From Prasinococcaceae sp. CCMP 1430 (Eukaryota > Plantae > Prasinodermophyta), in NCBI GenBank assembly GCA_013416795.1, contig RQSC01000003.1:269624-295816 (forward strand): 26,193 nt of DNA, written 5' to 3'. Below are positions 1,122 through 22,152 of this stretch, piece after piece; positions within the stretch are counted from its first letter, which is position 1; each line of letters starts with the position of its first letter. A program made the position numbers and the translations under genes. The notes under the pieces were generated by a model. The model was not told where the DNA came from. It worked only from the letters and a program-made list of their open reading frames with translations, and made no database searches.

Positions 1122-2405
1122 TCAAGGGTTGAGCACGCCTGGCGCCTGTTTGAGCATCGCCCGCTTGAAGCCCTCCCGTACCGCCAAGTCGTCGAGGATC
1201 TCGATGCTCCCCCCAGGTATCGCCATGGAGCGCACGGAGCGATACAGCCGCTCGACGACTTTCCCCTTGCCTTCCTTGATGACCGAGGCGCCGCCAAAGA
1301 TCTGGCTGGCCTCGCGCGCGCACGTCTCGAAGGTGAGCGTCGACTGAACCTTGCACAGCGCAGCGCGGCCGCCGAGCTCGGCGTCCGGCACGCCACTGGC
1401 GATCTGATAGGCGAGCGACTCGACCATGTCCCAGCTGGACTCAATCAGCCGCGCCATGGTGGCAATTTTTGCGCGAATGACCTGGTGCTCCACCAAGCGC
1501 TTTCCGAAAGTCTTGCGGCGCAGCGCATGGCGGGTGGCCTCCTCCAGGCACAGGCGCGCGCACCTCGTCGCCTGCACAGACAGCACGAGCCTCTCGTGGT
1601 TGAAGTTGGTCACGATGTACCTGAAGCCTCTGCCCTCTTCTCCTATCATATTACTAAGCGGCACGCGCACGTCATCGAGCGTGACGAACGTTGTGTTTGA
1701 GGTGTCCGCCGCCTGCGTCTCGAGCTTTCGCACGTGGAGCCCCGGCGTGTCTGCGGGCACAAGCACGAGCGATATGCCCGCCATGCCCGGGCCACCTGTG
1801 CGCACGGCCATCACGAACCACGACGCCCACAGCCCGTTCGAGATCCACTTCTTCTGGCCGTTGATTAGGAAAGACGCGCCGTCCTCGGAGCGCACGGCGC
1901 TCGCGCGAATAGCACTCACGTCGGAGCCGGCAGTGGGCTCCGAGATGGCCAGGCATATGAACTTCTCGCCGCGGATGACAGGGGGCGCCACCTCGCGCCG
2001 CATTGCGTCCGACCCGTGCTCCAGCACCGGCGGCAGCGCCATCGAGTTTATCGCGAGCCCGCCCATGACGCCTGGCACGCCAATGCGCGCGAGCTCATCC
2101 CACATAATGACCTCGTGGAAGGCGTCGAAGCCCTCGGGCGGCGTGCCATCGTACTCCTGAGGGAAGATGGCGCCGGCGATGCCCGCGTCGTACGCCTCGC
2201 GGTGCAGCTCCCTCGGGTAGCTCGCGCCCTTCTCAAGCCACTCCTCGGCGCGCGGCTTGACGCTCTCCGCCCACGCGCGGCACCTGTCGCGGAATGCCGC
2301 GTGCGACGCCGTATAGTACGGGCTCGCATGCCCCTGGTACCATGCAGGGTCGGCGAACGGCACGCCGTCGCCGAGGGGCGGCAGGCCGGGTCGCCGCGGC
2401 GCCAT
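1122..2405 (-). CDS. Acyl-CoA dehydrogenase (LCAD-like), 427 aa, intronless as seen; the 5' end abuts the assembly gap
   Basis: ACAD motifs LAISEPTAGSDV, INGQKKWISNG, NFNHERL, RKTFGKRLVEHQVIR, QIFGGASV and IPGGSIEIL. ATG at 2405 (MAPRR...), TGA at 1122-1124. Confidence 0.93.
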   Translation of the reverse strand: MAPRRPGLPPLGDGVPFADPAWYQGHASPYYTASHAAFRDRCRAWAESVKPRAEEWLEKGASYPRELHREAYDAGIAGAIFPQEYDGTPPEGFDAFHEVIMWDELARIGVPGVMGGLAINSMALPPVLEHGSDAMRREVAPPVIRGEKFICLAISEPTAGSDVSAIRASAVRSEDGASFLINGQKKWISNGLWASWFVMAVRTGGPGMAGISLVLVPADTPGLHVRKLETQAADTSNTTFVTLDDVRVPLSNMIGEEGRGFRYIVTNFNHERLVLSVQATRCARLCLEEATRHALRRKTFGKRLVEHQVIRAKIATMARLIESSWDMVESLAYQIASGVPDAELGGRAALCKVQSTLTFETCAREASQIFGGASVIKEGKGKVVERLYRSVRSMAIPGGSIEILDDLAVREGFKRAMLKQAPGVLNP

Positions 2406-2426
2406 GCGAGCGGCCGCACGCGGCCG

Positions 2427-2809
2427 NNNNNNNNNNNNNNNNNNNNNNNNNNNNNNNNNNNNNNNNNNNNNNNNNNNNNNNNNNNNNNNNNNNNNNNNNN
2501 NNNNNNNNNNNNNNNNNNNNNNNNNNNNNNNNNNNNNNNNNNNNNNNNNNNNNNNNNNNNNNNNNNNNNNNNNNNNNNNNNNNNNNNNNNNNNNNNNNNN
2601 NNNNNNNNNNNNNNNNNNNNNNNNNNNNNNNNNNNNNNNNNNNNNNNNNNNNNNNNNNNNNNNNNNNNNNNNNNNNNNNNNNNNNNNNNNNNNNNNNNNN
2701 NNNNNNNNNNNNNNNNNNNNNNNNNNNNNNNNNNNNNNNNNNNNNNNNNNNNNNNNNNNNNNNNNNNNNNNNNNNNNNNNNNNNNNNNNNNNNNNNNNNN
2801 NNNNNNNNN
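2427..2809. other. Assembly gap (383 N)
   Basis: Run of N. Confidence 1.
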
Positions 2810-3003
2810 CGCGCGGTCGCGGCGGCAGAGCGGCGAGGCAGGCGACCATCGAGCGGCGGGCCGCCGCCCGCCTGGGCCGCCGCACTTTCCGCCCCACGCG
2901 CCGTTCCAGAAAAAATAATACGCAAAAGGCCGGGAAAAAAACACCCAACCAACAAACGCAACGGCGCCCCGCCGGCATCCATCAATGATGGATCCGAACC
3001 GGG

Positions 3004-3115: not shown

Positions 3116-3324
3116 TTGACATCCAGCCCGATCCGGACGATGGTGGTGTACCTGGTTTGTAGCACTGTACCTGGTACTCCACAGCTGTTAGACTGTCAGA
3201 CCGTAGATTGCACCTGGGTGTAGTACAATGTGCAGGCGTCATCAGAGGATGACGTGCGTCGTTTTATTCGAGGGTGCGCACACAAAAATGTCAGTTTGAA
3301 ATTGCCGCGCGCAGGTTTTGGCGC

Positions 3325-6300
3325 ATGGGCGCCGCGTTTGATGATCGGCATGCAACACCCGCTGATCGGCGCGTCGGTGCGCGCGCGCGCGCGCACGGGG
3401 GGCCGGGGCCACACAGCGCGCGCGCCCGGACGCTGCTCGCGGCGGCGGCGGCGCTCGCGGCGGCGGGCGGGGTGGGCGCGGCGGACACGAAGCCGCAGCC
3501 GCAGCTCTGCGTGGGCACCAAGCCGGGGAAGTGCGACGTCATAGAGAACAACGTGCCCGCTGCGATGTATGCCCCGCCGAAGAAGGTGCGGAGCCCGCGC
3601 AGGCGAAAAATCCAACACCCATTTCCTTCCCGCGCGGAGAGCAGTGCGACTTGCCCCCCTCCCCGCTCCGCGCGCGCTCCGCCGCCACGCGCGCGGGGCA
3701 GTCGCTCGTCGCGCGTGCCACACGCCAGCGAGCTCGGTGGGAGGGCCGCCAAGGTCGGCGTAGTGCGCCGTCGGTGCTCGGCAGATGAACAATGCAGCCA
3801 CGACCCACGGCTCACCGCCTCTTGATGCTGGCGCTGTGTTGACCGCGGGCTGACACGGATCGGCTGCCCGCTGCTGGCGCGCCGCGCGCCCGCGCCAACG
3901 CAGGAGGACCCTGACGAGGGGCCGGCGAATCACAAGGTGTACCCCGAGGGCAAGGACTCGGTCACGCTGTACGTCTCGGCCAAGGAAAACGAGGCCAAGA
4001 AGGCGGTGCTCATGGCGCTGGGCACCGACAAGACGCTGGACCCCAAGGTGACGGCCAACTGGACCGGCGCGATCGCCCCGGGCGACACCGGGCTGGCAAC
4101 CGTCACCTTTAACTGCAAGGAGGGCAACGCGGACGCCACGCGCGTCATGCTCGTCCTCGCTGACCGGCCCTCGGGGGTCGCCGCACGCTTTGCGATGTAC
4201 AAGAAGTGCGCGGGTGTCCAGACGTCGCAGGACACCGTCAAGGCCATCGGAGTGGACGTCGCCACCAAGGCCGGCCTGGGCCCTGCGACGGGCGAGAGGC
4301 ACAGGGCCATCAGCACGCCCGACGTGGTCGAGAACGGCAGCCCCACCGCTGCGTACGTCATGGGCACCGACGCCAAGAAGGACGGCCTCAAACCTGTTGC
4401 GGCTGACGTGGGCTTCACCACCTTCTTCGTCGCCCTGAGCAGCGAGGCGCGCGAGAACGGCGACAAGATCGAACTTGGCCCGATGTCAGTGATCGCCGAG
4501 GCCTCGACCGCCCGCCCCGTGGTCAGCGGCCCACTCGCCGAGGGGGGGTCGCTCGCCAAGGACTCGCCAGCGTCACTCCCGCTGACCGTCACCTACAACT
4601 GCCGCCGCACGGGCAAGACGCCCGTCAGCGTGCGCATTCCCGTGACGAGCCCGAAGGGCTCCATCACCTTCTCGTTCATGAAGGAGTGCGCCGTCGACGA
4701 CACGAACAAGACCGCCATCAAGCGCGCCGTGCGCGCCAAGGCGAGCGTGCCCGGTCTGACGGTCCAGACGTCCAACACCTACGACCCGTTCACCATGGTG
4801 GAGAACGGCTTCACCGTGCCGTCGTTCACCGAGTCGGCGGGCGGCGACCCCGGGGCACCGGGGCGCAACATGATCAGCGCTGGCCGCAAGGCGTTCTCCT
4901 TCGCGGCCTTCATGTCGGGCGAGAACACCGAAGCCGTGGCCGTCGATGCCCCCATCGTCTTCGTGGAGGACGCCGAGGTGGCGTCCGCGCGCATCGACGA
5001 GGACATCACCCAAGTCACCGCCGAAAAGACCGAGATGAAGCTCAAGTTCCGCTGCTTCAAGACGGGCTCGACCAAGGTGTCTGTGACCATCCCGCTCAAC
5101 CCGCCCACCGGCGAGGTCAAGTTCACCATCGTCAAGGTGTGCGACCCCGACCAGTCGCTGATCGAAGAGAACCGCGCCGCGGAGAATGCCGACGCGGGGG
5201 CCAAGCCGACGATGGCGCTGGACATCGCCACGAGCGCCAAGGGAGACCCCGTTATCGTGCGCAACGGCAACGTGCAGGATGACTTCGTGGCGCGCAAGCT
5301 GGCGACCCGCTACGCGCCGCCGGTGGACGACGTCCTGAAGGCCACGCGCGCTCCTGCGCTCAAGCTGAGCGAGGGCTGCCTCGGCTGCCTGCCCGCGACC
5401 GACTCGCTGGGCATGACGGCCGCGACGGTGCAGTCCAAGCTGGTGAAGTGCAACGTCACCGCGGCGTGCTCCTTCGAGGAGTACAACGCCGCGCGCAAGG
5501 CGTTCCGCAAGGTGGTCAGCGGCGCCTACGGCGACGCCGCCGGCCCGGCGGTGATCGCCCCGGGCGCCTTCTCGATGGATGCGTTCCTGCGTGCGAGCAG
5601 CGGCGCCCTGCAGATCGGCAACGCCGAGGTGGTGTCCTTCGACGAGAAGGTGTGCGTCCCCAAGCTGGTCGGCCCCGGCGCGCTTGCCAGCACGCTCAAC
5701 CCCGACGGCAGCAACAAGGCCAAGCGCCTCACGGTGACCTTCAACTGCGTGGGCTACGGCGGCACCGCTCTGGTCATGGTGACCGTGCCCGTGTACGGTC
5801 GCAAGAGCGGAACCGTGAGCTTCTCGGTGCTCAAGCAGTGCGCGGCCGTCAACGCCACCGAGTTCGGCGGCGAGGAGAGTGACAACGCGGAGATGGCCAA
5901 CGAGCTCGAGAACGTCATCGCGCACGCCGGCGCGGGCCTCCACGTGGGGCGCGCGGCCTCGGGCGATGGCGCAAAGGACGTGGTCGACAATGGTCTGGTG
6001 CTGCCCGAGTTCCTGCCCACCAGCAGCGTCGAGGACCGCGATGCGGGTGGCTACCAGGTCACCGAGGACAAGAACAGCTTCACGTTCTACCTCAGCAGCG
6101 CCGAGGGGCCCGACGCCGAGGCCATCTCGGTGGGCATCCCGCAGGTGATCTCCTTCAACCCGCGCATCGCCAAGACCACCGTGAGCGAGACGAGCGACCT
6201 GCACCGCAGCCAGGCGTCGCGCCGCAAGTTCCAGCTCAACGAGCCGCTGGAGATGACGGTGAATTTCGACTGCCTGTCCGAAGGCATCGCGGTCATCGCC

Positions 6301-7752
6301 GTCGCCGTGCCGCTGGGTCCCCGCGGCGGCGGGATCCACTTCGAGTTCACCAAGGCCTGCCCGGCGGACGAGGGCTTCAAGCCCTTCACGGGCGAGGTCA
6401 TCAAGGGGCTGGCGGTCGGCACCGCCGAGGGCGAGGCGGACGTCATCAAGGACGGCCAGACGGCGCGCCTGTGGACGCGCTACAAGAAGTCGGTCGGCCC
6501 AGGCGGTCGCAAGATGGTGGACGCCGGCACGCAGACGGTGGACTTCTACCTGAAGTACGATGGCGACAAGCCCATGAACTTCGGCGCCCCGCTCGTGGTC
6601 GCGCACAAGCCCACGTGCAACCCCAGGATCGAGGGCGCGGCCGCGGAGGGCGGCGCGCTCACCAAGTCGACCACAAAGCTCAGCATTCGCTTCAACTGCG
6701 TGTGGGACGGCCAGACCGCGGTGACGGTGTTTGTGCCGCTGCCAGGGCACAAGGACAACGGCCACGTCGTCTTCACCATGACCAAGCGCTGCACCACTAT
6801 GGCGAGCGACGTCAAGGGTTCCGACTTTGAGATTCCCCTCGACGAGCTCAGGCTCGTGGACGCCGACGGCGACGGCGTGGTCGGGCCGTTGCACGAGGAC
6901 TGGATGCCCTGGAACGCCGACGCCGACTACGGGGACTACTACGGAGCCTACCGCGGCTACTACGCCGCGTACGACAACTACTACGCGTACGACTACGCCC
7001 CCTGGACCAATGACTGGCAGCCAGACGAGTGGGCCGACAAGAAGAGCGACGAGTACTGGTGGTACGGCGATCAGACCTCCTACTATGGCTCGTACGACTC
7101 GTACAACGAGGGCGATATGATCGACCCTTGGAGCTACGAGCTCGAAGGCTACGGCGACGAGTACGAGGATATGGGCGACGCGCTGGTTGACGAGATCGAG
7201 GCACGCGGCTGGGACAACACCAACGCACTCAGCGTTGGCACGCATGTCGGCAGCATGGACATCGTCAAGGACGGCGTGCCGATGCCGCGCTTCAAGCTCT
7301 GTGAGCCAACGCCGGGCCAACCGTGCGATCTCATGTCGCTGATGGGCAAGGACGCGACCTCGTTCGTCGTCACCGCCAGCTCGGGCTCCGAAATCCTGCG
7401 CCGCCCGCAGGCATTTGCCAAATACCCGCGCAGCGTGGTGGCTGAGATTACGAACGCGGACGCGATCGACGGCAAGGTGGTCACCCCCGAGGAGCCCGTC
7501 GAGGTGCACGTCTCGTTCACATGCCTCAAGCAGGGCGTCACCTCGCCCGTGCTCATTACACTGCCGTATGGCCCGTTCCACGTGGACTTCGCGCTGGTTA
7601 AGGTGTGCGGCAAGCGCTACTCCGCCGCGACCGTCGCAATTGAGGCCACGACGGTGTTCGTGGGCATCGGCATCGTGGCGTCGATGCTACTCAGCTTCCT
7701 GGCCGGCAGCAAGCTCAAGAAGCTCAGGGACGGCCGCGACCTCAACGCTTAG
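3325..7752 (+). CDS. Uncharacterised large type I membrane protein, ~1369 aa, join(3325..3585,3904..7752): signal peptide, 7 Cys-paired beta-sandwich repeats, C-terminal TM helix, short basic tail
   Basis: Long ORF with strong GC3 codon bias. The upstream in-frame exon encodes TLLAAAAALAAAGGVGA (signal-peptide-like). Phase-0 intron GTGCGG(3586)...GCTGAC...ACGCAG(3903). TM segment TTVFVGIGIVASMLLSFLAGS followed by KLKKLR. Sequons NWT, NKT, NVT, NAT. Start codon is uncertain. Confidence 0.85.
3586..3903 (+). other. Spliceosomal intron (318 nt, phase 0)
   Basis: AAG|GTGCGG donor, GCTGAC branch-like site at 3849-3854, ACGCAG| acceptor. It joins two exons in frame. Confidence 0.8.
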
Positions 7753-8016: not shown

Positions 8017-11000
8017 TCACACGGGGGCCAGGGCGCCCCAACGCGCGCTGCTGGCCGTTGCTTGCCCATTTTGGATGAGCGGTGCGTCCTCGCGCTCCCC
8101 GAACGCCGATACGGACGAGTCTGACCCATGCTCATCATCGAGGAGCTCGTCCGTCAGTACGGCGTCAGCCAGCGCGGATCCGTCGACCCTGTGCATGGCG
8201 TCCGGGCCGCTCCTCACGCTCGCGAGAACCTTCGGAGGCCTATACCAGCGGAGTGCGAGGCTGGAGCACACGACACTCACGCTACTGCACGCCATTGCAG
8301 CCCCGGCGAGCATGGGCGGGAGACGCAAGCGCCAGCAGGGATACAGCACGCCCGCCGCGATAGGAATCATGAAGACGTTGTAACCCATGGCCCAGACGTA
8401 GTTGATGCGGATGCGCTTGAAGGTGGTGCGCGACAGGTCGATGGCAGTGAGCACGTCGCTCAGCGCGTCACGCATGAGCACAAAGCTGGCGGCCTCCATG
8501 GCGATGTCGGCGCCCGCCCCAATGGCCACGCCGATGTCCGCGGCCGCCAAAGCTGGCGCGTCGTTGACGCCATCGCCGACCATCGCCACCACGTGCCCTT
8601 TGGCCTTGAGATCCGCCACGATGCCGGCTTTACCTCCAGGCAGCACCTCAGCGCGAACGTTCGACGGGTCGATACCCGCCGCGTACGCTACCGCCTCCGC
8701 CGTCGCCCGGTTGTCCCCTGTGATCATGTGGACCTCGATGCCAAGCTTCTCCAGCCCGCTGACAACCGCCGACGCATCCGGCTTGATCGGGTCGGCCATG
8801 CCAAATGCGGCCACGAACACGCCATTGCAGGCGGCCACGATGGGCGTGCGTGCAAAACGCGCACACTCCGACACAAACTGCTGGGCGCGCTCCATGTTGA
8901 CCCCCTCGAGCTGCAGGAAAGCCGGGCTGCCCACGAGCATGGTCGTGCCATCCACGTCGCACTTGACGCCACGACCAGGAACAGCCTCGAAGTTCTCCAC
9001 GCCAAGTTTGGCCATGGACCGGCCGGCCACCTCTCTGCGGCAGAAGTTCACGATGGCGCTCGCCAGCGGGTGCTCGGAGCTCCCCTCGGCCGCGCCCACC
9101 AGGGCAAGCACGCGTTCGCGCGTGAGGCTGGGGTCGTGCGCGAGCATGGCGTGCTCTTCGAAGACCTCGACGCTGGGCCGGCCGCGCGTGAGGGTGCCCG
9201 TCTTGTCGAAGGTGATCGCCGTGACGCGGTGAGCCATCTCGAGCGCCTCGCCACCCTTGATAAGGATGCCGTGGGTCGCGCCCACACCTGTGCCCACCAT
9301 CACGGCGGTCGGTGTGGCGAGGCCCAGCGCGCAGGGGCACGCGATCACCACCACGGAAATGGCGAACAACAACGAAAACAGGAAACTGTCTGTGCCCTTG
9401 GGACGCCAGTCGTCCGGGTACAGCCCCTCCACGCCCGCGAGCATCCACACAGAGAAGGTAATTAATGACAGGCTGACCACCACAGGCACGAAGATCGAGC
9501 TCACAACGTCGGCGAAAGCCTGCACAGGCGCTTTGCTCAGCTGTGCTCGCTCCACTAGTCGCACGATCTGCGACAGGACGGCGTCCGCACCGACGCGCGA
9601 CGCGCGCACCCTCAGCGCGCCGTGGCCATTCAACGTGCCGCCCGTCACCTCCGAGCCAACGCCCTTGGCCACGGGCATTGACTCGCCGGTGAGCATGGAC
9701 TCGTCGACGTGTGATTGACCGTGGATGACGACGCCGTCGCAGGGCACCCGCCCCCCGGGTCCCACGCGCAGGACGTCGTTGGCCTGCACCAGTGCGGCGT
9801 CAATCTCCTTCTCAGACAACACACTGCCGTCCTTGTCGAGCTCGAGCAGTGTGGCCAGATCGGGCGTCAGCTGCAACAGCTTGCGAATGGCGTCAGACGT
9901 GCGGCCCTTGGCGAGCGCCTCGAGGTACTTGCCCAGCAGGATGAACGTGATTAGCATCGCACTGGTCTCGAAGAAGTCCGTATCCTGGAAGGATGTGAAG
10001 GCGCCGTAGATCACCGCAAACACCGAGTAGAAGTAGCTCGCGTTGGTACCGAGTGAGACGAGCACATCCATGTTGGCCGCGCGGTTGCGCAGCGCCTTGA
10101 TGGCGCCCGTGTGGAAGCGCATTCCGACCCAAAACTGCACGGGCGTGGCGAAGATGAACATGAGCACGCTGTGCAATCTGAAGGGGCCGACGTGATCGTC
10201 GAGCAGGCGGTGCGCTGCAGGGATATGCGGACAGATGCTCGTGACGACGAACGCTGGCAGCGTGAACAGGCATGAGCGTCGAAAGAGCGTCCACCACATC
10301 TGCACCTCGCCCTTCGTGCGCTCGTCGGCCACGTCGCCTCCCATGCCCCCGGCAGCCGCCGGCCGCGCCTCGAAGCCCGCCTCCGCGACAGCAGCAACGA
10401 TGTCGCGCACACCCGTGAGGGCCGGGTCATACGCTACGTGCGCGGCGCCTGCTAGAAGGTTGACCTGCGCGTCTTCCACGCCGTGTACGCGCAGTAGCGC
10501 GCCCTCCACCGCCGAGCTGCAGCTCGCGCAGCTCATCCCCTTGACCTCCAGGTCGACCATGCGCTCGCCGATCTCGATGGCCGCCTCTGCGCCGAAGCCG
10601 CAATTCAGGATGGCCTCGCGCAGCGCCGCCGGCTCGATCGCGCGCGGATCGTAGCTTACCTCTGCCTGTTCTGTGGTGGCAGAGACGACCGCCCGCGTGA
10701 CGCCGTCCAGCTTCCGCAGCGCGTTCTCCACGGACGCCGAGCATGCCGCGCAAGTCATTCCAGTGACTACAAAGCGCGCTTTCGCCTCCGCCCCGCCAGC
10801 GGCGGCGCCGTTGCAGCCTTCCGCTCGTGCTGGCCCGCCCCCCGCCCCCCGCTGCCCGCCAACGGATCCGTTGGCGCCTGCGACGCTCGCCTCGAAGCCC
10901 GCGTCCTGTATGGCCTGCACGATCGCCCTCTGCACCTCCTCGGTCGCCGGCTCGCCCTCCAGCAGCGTCGCGACTGCGTCACCGCTCACGGCCGACGCGG

Positions 11001-11115
11001 CTGCGCCGCCGACAGCCGGCGACGCGCCGAGAATCGCTCGCTCGCACGCAGCGCTGCACGCCGCACACGTCATCCCCCCCACGCGCAGCCTCACCTCCTC
11101 CACGGAGGCGCCCAT
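8017..11115 (-). CDS. P1B-1 type Cu(I)-transporting ATPase (RAN1/HMA5/ATP7-like), ~1032 aa, intronless, 3 N-terminal metal-binding domains
   Basis: GMTCAAC x2 and GMSCASC, TGES, CPCALGLATP, DKTGT, SEHPL, GDGVNDAPAL, YN and MACSS in the last TM helices. ATG 11115 (MGASVEEV) is preferred over upstream ATGs. Confidence 0.97.
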   Translation of the reverse strand: MGASVEEVRLRVGGMTCAACSAACERAILGASPAVGGAAASAVSGDAVATLLEGEPATEEVQRAIVQAIQDAGFEASVAGANGSVGGQRGAGGGPARAEGCNGAAAGGAEAKARFVVTGMTCAACSASVENALRKLDGVTRAVVSATTEQAEVSYDPRAIEPAALREAILNCGFGAEAAIEIGERMVDLEVKGMSCASCSSAVEGALLRVHGVEDAQVNLLAGAAHVAYDPALTGVRDIVAAVAEAGFEARPAAAGGMGGDVADERTKGEVQMWWTLFRRSCLFTLPAFVVTSICPHIPAAHRLLDDHVGPFRLHSVLMFIFATPVQFWVGMRFHTGAIKALRNRAANMDVLVSLGTNASYFYSVFAVIYGAFTSFQDTDFFETSAMLITFILLGKYLEALAKGRTSDAIRKLLQLTPDLATLLELDKDGSVLSEKEIDAALVQANDVLRVGPGGRVPCDGVVIHGQSHVDESMLTGESMPVAKGVGSEVTGGTLNGHGALRVRASRVGADAVLSQIVRLVERAQLSKAPVQAFADVVSSIFVPVVVSLSLITFSVWMLAGVEGLYPDDWRPKGTDSFLFSLLFAISVVVIACPCALGLATPTAVMVGTGVGATHGILIKGGEALEMAHRVTAITFDKTGTLTRGRPSVEVFEEHAMLAHDPSLTRERVLALVGAAEGSSEHPLASAIVNFCRREVAGRSMAKLGVENFEAVPGRGVKCDVDGTTMLVGSPAFLQLEGVNMERAQQFVSECARFARTPIVAACNGVFVAAFGMADPIKPDASAVVSGLEKLGIEVHMITGDNRATAEAVAYAAGIDPSNVRAEVLPGGKAGIVADLKAKGHVVAMVGDGVNDAPALAAADIGVAIGAGADIAMEAASFVLMRDALSDVLTAIDLSRTTFKRIRINYVWAMGYNVFMIPIAAGVLYPCWRLRLPPMLAGAAMACSSVSVVCSSLALRWYRPPKVLASVRSGPDAMHRVDGSALADAVLTDELLDDEHGSDSSVSAFGEREDAPLIQNGQATASSARWGALAPV

Positions 11116-11591
11116 CCCGGCCAGCCGAGCGGCGCTCGCGCCCTCCCTCCGCGCCCCCCGCTTCAGCGTGCGCACCCGCCGCGCCGCGCCGCGCCAGCAC
11201 GGGGACTGGGGCATAGGTATCATCGTCTGGACGAGCGCGCTGCTGGTCATGTACACCGCGGTGTGGCCCGCCGCCGGCGGCGGCGCCGCCGCGCCGCGCT
11301 GCTGCGAAAAAACGCACCGCTTCCACCACCGGCGGGTGTTGGCGAGGAGGGATGGAAGGGGGGGCAAAGGGGCAGGCGCGCAGGGTATCATCATCACGCT
11401 ACGCTGGGCGCCATGCGCCGTGAACGTGTGGGCCTCACCATCACTTCATGCAGCTGCTCCGTTTTTTTTTTTGGTTCCCTTCTCCACGCCCCGTGTCTCC
11501 GTCAAATCGCACGTGTTTTTTGTTTTTTTTTGTCACGGAGAGGGACGCCTGGCCATATTGCTGTACTGTATAGACGGATGGTGACCTACGG

Positions 11592-18350: not shown

Positions 18351-21300
18351 ATGGTGGACTCGCCGTACACGCCGGGCGCCCAAGGTGAGGCGCTGTCGCT
18401 GCTTTGCTGCGGCCGCGGCTGCGCGGAGGGCACACACACCGCCGCAAGCGCGTGTGCGCGCGAAAAAAGTGCATGCTCTTTGTCGTTGCGATCACTTGAA
18501 ATCAGTCGCTTGCTCACCCCCCGCACACGCCCGGCGATGGCGGCGGCGGTAGGATGTGTGGGGAAGTGAGCACGCGAGACGTGCCGATCCGAGCTGGCTG
18601 GGCAGGCGCCGCACGCGCGTGCTTGCGGTGGTGGCAGCGGTGCGCCCTGGCGGCGAGTTTTTGGTCTTTTGTTCGTGCGAGGCACGATGCGGCTCGGCGA
18701 GCCCCTGGTGCGGTGAGATCTATCGCCTTGCGAGACGCCGTCGCGCCGTGGCTGACGCGTCTCTCGGCGCGTGCGCGTTTGTGCCACACGAAGTGCAAGC
18801 GCCGCCGGTGGCGACGGTGGTCCAGGAAGGCATCGATAGCGGTAATGACCAGGCGCCGGTGATTGCCACGACGACGGGCAAGGCGTCTTGCCTGGAGGGC
18901 AAGTACCAGTGGCGGATCACCAACCTGAGCCAATTGCCCGACAACAAGGTCACGAGCAAGACGTTTATAATCGGCGACTTCAAGTGGAAGCTGCTCGTGT
19001 TCCCGCGTGGGAACAACATGTCAAACGCGGACTTCATGTCGGTCTTTCTCGACGTGACCGACGCATTGGAGCTGCCCCACACCTGGTCGCGCGGCGCCAA
19101 GTTCACGCTGAGGCTCGTCAACCAGCGGAACCCCGAGCAGTCGCTCGTGAAGGATACGAGCCACAACTTCACGCGGCTGGAGCGCGACTGGGGGTTCGCG
19201 CAGTTCGTGCGCCTGGATGAGGTGCGAGACCCTGCGAAGGGCTTCATGGTGAACGACTCAATCGTGCTGGAATGCGACGTGGGCATGTTCAAGGAGATCA
19301 CGTGGTGGAACTACGACAGCAAGAAGGAAACAGGCTACGTGGGGCTGAAGAATCAAGGCGCCACATGCTACATGAACAGCCTGCTGCAGTTCCTCTTCCA
19401 CATCCCTTTCTTCCGCCAGGCCGTGTACGGCCTACCGACCACGGAGGCGGACGAGCCCGCGAAGAGCATCCCCCTTGCGATGCAGATCCTGTTCTACAAG
19501 CTACAATTTGACAACAAGCCGGTGGGTACCAAGGAGCTGACCAAGTCGTTCGGCTGGGACTCATTCGAGGCCTTCCAGCAGCACGACGTACAGGAGCTCA
19601 ACCGCGTGCTGTGCGAGAACCTCGAGGAGAAAATGAAGAAGACAGACGTCGAGGGAACCATCCAAAAGCTCTTCGAGGGCCACATGGTCAACTACATTGA
19701 GTGTGTGAATGTCGACTTCAAGAGCACGCGCAAGGAAGAGTTTCTGGACCTGCAGCTGCAGGTGAAGGATTGCAAGGACGTGTACGAGTCGTTCGACAAG
19801 TACTGCGAGGTTGAAACGCTGGACGGGGACAACTTGTACGAAGCCGAGGGCCACGGGAAGCAGCCCGCGCGCAAGGGCGTGCTCTTCCAAGACTTTCCGC
19901 CTGTGCTGCAGCTGCAGCTCAAGCGCTTCGAGTACGACATGATGCGCGACATGATGGTGAAGATCAACGACCGCTACGAGTTTCCGCTCGTGCTTGACCT
20001 CGGCAAGAATGGCAAGTACATGACATCCGACGCAGACCTTTCGAAGCCCGCTCGGTATCTGTTGCACTCGGTCCTCGTCCACTCCGGGGGTGTTCACGGT
20101 GGCCACTACTACTCCTTTGTGCGTCCCGACTGCGGCGTCGAAGGGCTTGTGACGTCGAACGCGGGCGAATCGGGGCAGTGGTACAAGTTCGACGACGACC
20201 GAGTGACCAAGGAGGACGAACACGAAGCGACGGAGTTGCAGTTTGGTGGCGACGGCACGGCGCCCGCGCCGCCCCCGACTCAGGGCTTCAACCCGCCCCT
20301 TTTCTCCAAGCTGAGCAAGTACTCGAATGCCTACATGCTCGTGTACGTGCGTGAGTGCGACGTCAAGAGCGTGCTGTGCCCTGTGACCAAGCAGGACATT
20401 GCCCAGCACCTGCACGAGCGCGTGGAGCGAGAGGCGGCGGAGAAGGCGCGGCGGAAGAAGGAGCTGGAAGAGGCGCACATGTACACGCAGGTCAAGGTAG
20501 CCAGGGACGAGGACATGCGCGCACAGATCGGGAAGACGGAGAACATCCTCTTCGATCTGATAGACTATGAGAAAATCCCGGCGCGGCGCGTGCTCAACAC
20601 CACGACGCTCGCCCAGCTCAAGGAGGAGCTCGCGCAGGAATATGGCGTGCCGGCGACGGGCCTGAGGTTTTGGCTGTGGGCCAAGCGCGTGAACAAGAGC
20701 TGCCGCCCATCCAGATCTCTGGCGGACACGGAGCTGCAGACGCCCATGGACGAGCTCCACAAGGCGCTTGGCATGAAGGGGGGGGCGCTTGAGTTACTCG
20801 TCGAGACGCCGCAGCCACCGCTAACGTCGCTCCCGGTCGTTGCCAAGGGCGACATGCTGCTCTTCTTCAAGTTTTTCGACCCCGTCACCGCGACCATCAG
20901 CTTCGCAGGCTACATGTACTGCAACAACGGCGCGCAGCTCATGGACTACTGCACGAGGATGCGTGCCATGGTCGGCCTACCGGCCAATGAGGAGCTCCTA
21001 GCGTTCGAGGAGATCAAGTATGCTCCGGACCTGATGTGCGAGCCAGTGGACATGCGGCTGCAGCTCAGTGCTGCGCAGCTCGAGGACGGCGACATTATCG
21101 TCTTCCAGTCCTGGCGCGCCGGTAGGGGCCAGCCCTTTGAAACCGCGCTTAGCTTCCTCGAGTACCGCCTCCAGAGGCAGACGGTGGTCTTCCGCCCACT
21201 CGACAAGCCCGTGGATGACGACGCAGCCATCGAGGTGGAGCTCAGTCGCGAGTCTAACTACGACGACGTTACCGCGGCGCTCGGTGAGAAGCTGGGGGTG

Positions 21301-22152
21301 GACGACCCGACGCACTTGCGGCTGACGGCGCACAATGTACGTATGAATGGCCCGCGGCCCGGCCCCCTTCGCTTCCGCCAGATCGTGGCCGTCGGCAACA
21401 TGGTAGGTACACCCACCATCGATGAGCTGAAGGCAGCGTCGTACGAGCCGGTCACGCTGTACTACGAGCGGCTGTCGATGCCACTCCACGAGCTGGAGAC
21501 GCTCAAGACTCTCAAGGTTGATTTGTACAGCGCCGACTGCAAGTATGTGTCGACGCACACGATTCACGTGCCGCCGAGCGCGCCCGTGGCCGCGGCGCTG
21601 GCGGAGGTGGCCAAAGCGGCATCGCGTCCACCCGATGCGCCCCCACTTCGCCTGGTGCATGTGCACCATTCCAAGATCTTCAACGCTTTTGAGGCCGGCC
21701 AAGAGCTGTCCCATGTCGACTCGAACGCATACCTGCGCGCCGAGGAAGTGCCGGAGGATGATGCGGGGGCGCCGTCGCTGCTCTACGTTTACCATGTTGA
21801 GGAAGGCTCCTTGGAACAACCTGCGCACACCACACACTTCGGTGAACCCATGCTCGTCGGGTTGCATGATGGGGAGACGGTTGCGAGCGTGAAGGCCCGC
21901 ATCCAGAGGCGCCTCAGTGTCAGCGATGAGGACTTCGCCAAGTGGAAGTTCCATGGCTTCTGCGGCGGGCAGGGGTCGCCTCTGCGGGACGGGGACGTGG
22001 TTGCCGACAAGATCCACGCCATGAACCGCAACCCGACGTCGATGTACGATACATACCTGGGGGTAGAGCACGCCAACACCGGGCCGCGTCGCCCGGTGGG
22101 GGCGAGCCGGCCAGCGACGGGCTTCGAACGCTCAATCAAGATCTCAGGCTGA
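18351..22152 (+). CDS. UBP12: MATH-domain ubiquitin-specific protease UBP12/13 (USP7 orthologue), join(18351..18384,18794..22152), ~1130 aa; a further upstream coding exon is possible (acceptor at 18341)
   Basis: MATH domain (FIIGDFKWKLLVFPRGN, DWGFAQF), Cys box GLKNQGATCYMNSLLQ (Cys at 19366), QHDVQE, His box HSGGVHGGHYYSF, WYKFDD, SNAYMLVY, UBL tail and C-terminal LGVEH...ERSIKI. Intron CAAG|GTGAGG(18385)...GCTGAC(18751)...GAAG|(18793). Confidence 0.95.

Follow-up and report, generated by a model that had tools for sequence, protein, structure and literature searches.

The question raised by this locus is what an algal protein made of seven tandem repeats is, and whether its likeness to an animal signalling domain reflects common descent. 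The gene lies on the plus strand, between positions 3325 and 7752 of the 26,193-nt stretch of Prasinococcaceae sp. CCMP 1430 that we analysed (hereafter, the window). A first-pass annotation, made from the letters of the sequence, had described its product as an orphan cell-surface protein whose repeats end in a cysteine signature recalling the WIF domain of metazoan WIF1 and RYK. We found that the gene encodes a real membrane-anchored protein. Its repeats are members of a large unnamed domain family that occurs in eukaryotes other than animals, and the nearest relative known for them, by fold as well as by sequence, is the WIF domain that metazoans have in WIF-1 and RYK/Derailed. Of the readings considered, specific homology to WIF has the best support, with a probability of about 0.6; it is likely and not proven because generic immunoglobulin-like (Ig-like) folds of the PapD/ASH type score almost as high.

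Gene model and protein architecture

The gene has two exons (3325-3585 and 3904-7752) and a spliced product of 1,369 amino acids (aa). Position 3325 is the first in-frame ATG past an in-frame stop at 3250, the GT donor of the intron is at 3586 and its AG acceptor ends at 3903, and exon 2 remains in frame until the stop at 7750-7752. The parts of the gene, with the evidence for them in brackets (HMM, hidden Markov model; i-E, independent E-value), are as follows.

3325-3585, plus strand: exon 1, with the start codon, a long N-region, the hydrophobic core of the signal peptide (aa ~36-53) and the initial ~30 aa of repeat 1 (L-C-V-G-T...C-D-V-I-E-N-N)
3586-3903, plus strand: GT...AG intron of 318 nt within repeat 1 (sequence; spliced junction in protein P0001; family HMM positions 3-38 upstream and 35-134 downstream)
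3904-4209, plus strand: remainder of repeat 1, to Cys189; Cys 158/189 (alignment, HMM)
4240-4689, plus strand: repeat 2, aa 200-349; Cys 320/349 (HMM i-E 9.8e-30; alignment)
4747-5142, plus strand: repeat 3, aa 369-500; Cys 471/500 (HMM i-E 7.1e-27)
5209-5841, plus strand: repeat 4, aa 523-733; Cys 702/733; with an insert of ~90 aa (HMM match split into positions 5-32 and 32-134)
5929-6360, plus strand: repeat 5, aa 763-906; Cys 877/906 (modelled alone and in tandem with repeat 6)
6400-6792, plus strand: repeat 6, aa 920-1050; Cys 1019/1050; the most canonical copy
6793-7218, plus strand: Asp/Tyr/Trp/Glu-rich spacer between repeats 6 and 7, aa 1051-1192 (142 aa) (composition, orthologs)
7219-7608, plus strand: repeat 7, membrane-proximal, aa 1193-1322; Cys 1294/1322 plus an extra pair 1220/1228 (HMM i-E 1.3e-22)
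7633-7707, plus strand: transmembrane helix, aa ~1331-1355; a Glu at the outer edge is conserved (hydrophobic stretch; orthologs)
7708-7752, plus strand: cytoplasmic tail of 14 aa (K-L-K-K...G-R-D-L-x-A) and stop codon

The splice proposed in the first-pass annotation is confirmed, because P0001 (PRCOL_00002018-RA of Prasinoderma coloniale, or MMETSP transcript open reading frame (ORF)) is 100% identical to our product over 1,289 aa and reads across the junction (...PPKK/EDPDEG...). Both the public gene model and the MMETSP ORF begin at Met81 (nt 3565), and both therefore carry neither the signal peptide nor the first strand and helix of repeat 1. We regard the 80 codons upstream of Met81 as coding because three orthologs (P0017, P0003 and P0028) keep the exon 1 motif C-V-G-T...C-D-[VI]-[VI]; in two of them, the full-length P0017 and the Prasinococcus protein P0028, a short classical signal peptide stands immediately ahead of C-V-G-T. 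The signal peptide claimed earlier is thus upheld, both by the hydrophobic core in exon 1 and by its counterpart in P0017, and the longer exon 1 corrects the public gene model. There are grounds on which the ORF could be thought an annotation artefact or a pseudogene, with its repeats mere low-complexity products of high G+C: the region has 64-69% G+C, where spurious long ORFs are common, an antisense ORF of 1,002 aa overlaps the gene, and the public model starts downstream of the signal peptide. However, the transcript-derived protein is identical, splice junction included, colinear orthologs retain every Cys pair down to 37% identity, homologues number in the hundreds and the structure models fold confidently. 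The chance of an artefact is in our opinion negligible, and we rejected this candidate on these four grounds.

The product has the layout of a type I membrane protein: a signal peptide, seven repeats each closing on a Cys...Cys pair, a single transmembrane helix and a short tail. This topology and the seven-copy beta-sandwich array had been proposed before, and both are supported. The family HMM found exactly seven copies in the ORF, the first split by the intron and the fourth by its insert, with main-segment i-E values from 3.5e-8 to 4.7e-35; it found no further copy or paralogue in the rest of the window. When the seven repeats were aligned with those of two orthologs, a common pattern emerged, made of G-L-x-V-G-T, a short gap and D-V-V-x-x-G, then an F-x-F-Y strand, a P-x-V strand and finally L-x-V-x-F-x-C-x3-G-x3-V-x-V-x-x-P...F-x3-K-x-C. 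All 14 coordinates given earlier for the seven Cys pairs were correct, and other details had to be amended: the repeats measure ~130-211 aa instead of ~145-270, there are five N-x-S/T glycosylation sequons (aa 139, 231, 355, 604 and 737) instead of four, and the tail has 14 residues, not ~13.

Three parts of the protein stand out when it is compared with its orthologs. The insert of repeat 4 (about 5284-5562) carries four extra cysteines (C-x2-C ... C-x5-C) that are conserved in P0017, P0003 and P0028; it also holds one conserved N-V-T sequon. The spacer, with 24 D, 20 Y and 9 W in 135 residues, starts with a calcium-loop-like D-x-D-x-D-G-[VI]-[VL]-x-P, and both motif and composition are kept in the three orthologs. 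Similar Tyr/Asp-rich membrane-proximal stretches occur in two family members of unrelated lineages (P0037 and P0035). Lastly, the transmembrane helix and tail are 64-72% identical to those of the orthologs and rank among the best-conserved parts of the protein; with respect to the Prasinococcus ortholog they are the best conserved (64% identity, versus 30-53% for the ectodomain repeats). The tail end, G-R-D-L-x-[AD], is also conserved among the orthologs.

A large family outside animals

The description of the protein as an orphan does not hold. Colinear orthologs with the same seven-repeat order, from Prasinoderma-like algae and from Prasinococcus, were found at 68% (P0017, environmental), 49% (P0003) and 37% identity (P0028, which matches Prasinococcus capsulatus transcripts). 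Moreover, when a profile built from 21 repeats was run against 1.84 billion representative proteins, it matched 508 proteins at E<=1e-3, 220 at E<=1e-10 and 54 at E<=1e-30, distributed over several eukaryotic supergroups; orthologs and profile matches together rule out an orphan gene. Most of the matches carry 2-9 repeats. Members with a named source include, besides Prasinococcus, the amoebae Flabellula baltica and Rhizamoeba saxonica, the ciliate Furgasonia blochmanni and the red algae Gracilaria domingensis, Gracilariopsis chorda and Agarophyton chilense, whose proteins of ~520 aa have three repeats and are annotated as "hypothetical protein". A search for further named taxa with a 32-protein family alignment returned only the first sequence of that alignment. 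The domain thus defines a large unnamed family in non-animal eukaryotes, with members in prasinodermophyte algae, in red algae, in leptomyxid amoebae, in one ciliate and in numerous environmental eukaryotes.

Architecture and signature are shared across this family. Nearly all complete members have a signal peptide, tandem repeats, a transmembrane segment and a short tail, and among the matches listed a single transmembrane helix after the last repeat, followed by a short tail (median 26 aa), was present in 84 members. The first Cys is invariant in an alignment of 93 domains, where the G, the K and the last Cys are conserved in at least 90% of the sequences. All seven repeats of the window protein fit the family signature G-L-x-V-G-T...D-V-V-x-x-G, F-Y strand, L-x-V-x-F-x-C-x3-G...V-x-V-x-x-P...F-x3-K-x-C. 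A Pfam scan of the window protein (no match at E<=1) and of ten relatives disclosed no Pfam domain in any of them. On two environmental contigs (L002, 5492-7160, and L003, 4047-5715) a three-repeat member adjoins an EMP70/TM9SF gene, which may be a coincidence.

Relationship to the WIF domain

We compared predicted structures of the repeats with known folds. Repeat 5 was modelled with AlphaFold 2 (AF2) from the 21-repeat alignment (pLDDT 83), and repeats 5-6 were modelled in tandem from 67 two-domain units (pLDDT 87, with most of repeat 6 at 80-98). The AF2 models present a first strand, a short helix, more strands and a closing three-strand meander; repeat 5 modelled alone is a beta-sandwich with a short helix following strand 1. 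In Foldseek searches of the PDB with repeat 5, ranks 1-5 were taken by human WIF-1 (2YGN, 2YGO, 2D3J and 2YGP) and Drosophila Drl-2 (7ME5), with a best E of 4.5e-4, a TM of ~0.5 and 17-18% identity, and in exhaustive VIA searches WIF was top for repeat 6 and tied top for repeat 5. WIF is therefore the best or joint-best structural match for the two modelled repeats, with identities of 17-20% for repeat 5 and 12-13% for repeat 6, and the matches span 117-127 residues, that is, the whole WIF domain.

The WIF domain (PF02019; WIF-1/Shifted and RYK/Derailed; 2YGN, 2D3J and 7ME5) shares with the repeats a beta-sandwich of ~130-145 aa with short helices after the first strands, and it is extracellular in WIF proteins, as the repeats would be. 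The arrangement is different: a WIF protein has one copy, with either EGF repeats or a transmembrane segment and a pseudokinase after it, whereas the window protein has seven tandem copies (up to 9 in relatives), a transmembrane helix and its 14-aa tail, and a Pfam scan disclosed neither an EGF nor a kinase domain in it. The Cys residue 144 of the repeat 5 model aligns with residue 177, the last of the domain in WIF-1. The WIF-1 disulfide is Cys140-Cys177, a spacing of 37 residues as compared with 28-31 in the window repeats, and the Cys pair of the repeats may be its counterpart.

A second line of evidence comes from sequence profiles. When 93 diverse family domains were scanned against Pfam, WIF (PF02019) was the most frequent family, with 4 matches (best E 0.0076) and 2 at most for any other; in an independent set of 122 other domains there were 7 WIF matches (best E 0.0047), and every other family appeared singly. 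Given a limit of E<=1 per query over 24,736 families, ~0.01 chance matches are expected for any named family in 215 queries, and 11 were seen for WIF. Whole-protein scans of 14 long members found WIF in 5 of them (E 0.017-0.49), always as a match between the C-terminal third of a repeat and WIF profile positions 53/76/83/86 to 108/110/131 of 131. The profile end (position 131) coincided with the terminal Cys of the repeat in three of the five proteins, the first Cys lying inside the aligned block (profile 76/86-131). The matches hence fall on the same C-x3-G...K-x-C block that had been singled out in the first-pass annotation. As for the WIF analogy drawn there, it is favoured by the Foldseek and VIA rankings and by this recurrence of Pfam WIF, and it stops short of formal membership because no match attains the Pfam threshold.

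It could be argued instead that the repeats are generic Ig-like sandwiches of the PapD/ASH/MSP type without a specific tie to WIF, that the Cys pair and the weak WIF matches come from convergence towards a common arrangement of strands, and that the protein is a spacer of Ig beads or an adhesin. In fact, PapD/ASH-type folds score nearly as high as WIF, and Pfam returned single weak matches to DUF1573, MOV-10 Ig-like, TIG and HYDIN/VesB Ig-like, every WIF match being likewise below threshold. However, most generic folds align over ~85-105 residues (a few up to 114), whereas WIF is covered whole; the WIF matches are colinear and end on the terminal Cys; and the excess over chance among the 215 domains is not approached by other Ig families, each with 2 matches or fewer. 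Sequence identity is less uniform, since PapD-like, ASH and MSP domains (pilus chaperones, HYDIN, CEP192 SPD-2, the VesB/VesC C-terminal domain) reach 6-10% in most cases over a shorter aligned core of repeat 5, and for repeat 6 the margin in favour of WIF is gone, VesC being at 16%. Unlike the window repeats, these domains have no conserved terminal disulfide, and ASH and MSP are cytoplasmic or ciliary and PapD bacterial, whereas the window family is secretory. We consider a purely generic Ig origin rather unlikely. Membership in a NOMO/Nup210-type group was also considered and ruled out, as neither sequence nor fold supported it.

Several observations weigh against homology with WIF. All WIF scores are under the Pfam gathering cut-off of 25 bits, the best members reaching 15.1-15.3 bits (E 0.017-0.019, whole protein). 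Two HMMER family profiles (A1 and A2) retrieved no WIF chain from the PDB sequences, only two chance uS9 matches and then none; similarly, the sole PDB match obtained by phmmer with the best WIF-matching domain (P0034:997-1143) was artefactual (concatenated RecA). The tandem model returned only generic Ig arrays in Foldseek, a result that is uninformative on WIF because such arrays dominate, and its inter-domain geometry is uncertain (pTM 0.59). Finally, we know of no Wnt or Hedgehog in the host alga or in the other algae and protists of the family, and where the protein resides, what it binds and what it does are, like the homology itself, matters that we infer. Taking both sides together, we consider that the family is most likely related to WIF by distant homology, of pre-metazoan age.

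Location and possible function

The features described above are those expected of a type I membrane glycoprotein of the secretory pathway, whose extracytoplasmic part of ~1,270 aa would form a string of seven beta-sandwiches, each presumably closed by a disulfide from the Cys of the ...F-x-C strand to the last residue of ...K-x-C. Such an array may be a stalk for multivalent binding or adhesion, placed at the cell surface or at the cell-wall interface. Ligands would be contacted where the family is most conserved, at the N-terminal corner formed by strand 1 and helix 1 (G-L-x-V-G-T ... D-V-V-x-x-G); in WIF domains, too, this region shows the highest conservation, and it binds ligands there. 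The WIF domain is a sandwich of nine strands in which a splayed corner bears two short helices, and its conservation is highest in alpha1, beta1, beta2, beta4 and beta7 (bioRxiv 10.1101/2021.04.29.442059). The acidic Tyr/Trp-rich spacer with its DxDxDG loop could be a calcium-dependent or cross-linkable membrane-proximal segment, and the strongly conserved transmembrane helix and tail might connect the protein with a partner that is membrane-bound or cytoplasmic. The long multivalent ectodomain, the spacer with its calcium loop and tyrosines, and the conserved helix and tail suggest a ligand-binding or adhesive ectodomain in a surface or wall-interface protein working with a membrane partner.

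The tails of other members point in a further direction. YxxPhi motifs were present in 36 of the 84 tails, as compared with 13.5 +/- 3.0 in shuffled tails (~2.7-fold); many members carry [KR]-Y-x-[PR]-V-S-T, and some an acidic dileucine. With tyrosine sorting motifs of this kind in many of its paralogous members, a large part of the wider family may cycle through endosomes. The window protein and its three orthologs lack the motif: their tails have no Tyr, no dileucine and no YxxPhi, and keep K-L-K-K...G-R-D-L-x-A instead. The protein might be pictured as a resident or cycling glycoprotein of endomembranes, the vacuole or a lysosome-like compartment, serving as a luminal coat or as a sorting or lipid-handling receptor in the manner of LAMPs or sorting receptors. 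A luminal lipid-handling role is conceivable, since the WIF domain of WIF-1 can hold a phospholipid within the sandwich, but RYK-type WIF domains have no lipid pocket (bioRxiv 10.1101/2021.04.29.442059). The bare tails of the window protein and its orthologs argue against such a role, and YxxPhi also drives the endocytosis of true surface receptors; we therefore regard an endomembrane residence as unlikely. The resemblance to LAMPs is one of analogy: these also have type I topology, beta-rich luminal domains stabilised by disulfides and a very short tail, and their tyrosine sorting motifs are shared by many family members, whereas the window protein's own tail has no YxxPhi. Membership in the LAMP family was ruled out, as no search gave a sequence or fold match to the LAMP domain.

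The neighbouring genes offer no functional context, being unrelated housekeeping genes for an acyl-CoA dehydrogenase, a heavy-metal P-type ATPase and a USP7-type protease. The first (ORF 1122-2978, minus strand, Pfam ACAD N/M/C domains) has an assembly gap, a run of N, at its 5' end (2427-2809). Outside this gap the window has 62-74% G+C, and an apparent dip to 43% is due to the gap; the source is a eukaryote. The other two are the following.

8017-11397, minus strand: heavy-metal (HMA-domain) P-type ATPase, a single long ORF
18556-22152, plus strand: MATH-UCH USP7-type ubiquitin protease, a single long ORF

The literature that we searched presents WIF as a domain of animals that is linked to the reception of Wnt and Hedgehog; a search on WIF domains in protists found nothing relevant. 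WIF-1 itself has been traced to the bilaterian ancestor in a phylogenetic study (PMC7565927). A family of tandem WIF-like domains in organisms other than animals appears to be undescribed so far. In the alga, the window protein is one of the largest predicted surface or secretory proteins. More broadly, over 500 representative proteins with WIF-like domains, from algae, amoebae and ciliates, have no Pfam model and go as "hypothetical protein" where they are named. If the homology is true, the origin of WIF moves well before animals, and many natural variants become available for asking what WIF bound before Wnt. We advance more tentatively, as a possibility that we would not yet favour, that the WIF of animal Wnt/Hedgehog signalling originated before animals and descends from an ancient pan-eukaryotic family of tandem disulfide-clamped ectodomains, to which the window protein with its seven copies would belong. 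The ligands of these ectodomains, at cell surfaces or endosomal membranes, would be hydrophobic or carry lipids. Should this be so, the study of the family would reveal the ancestral job of WIF.

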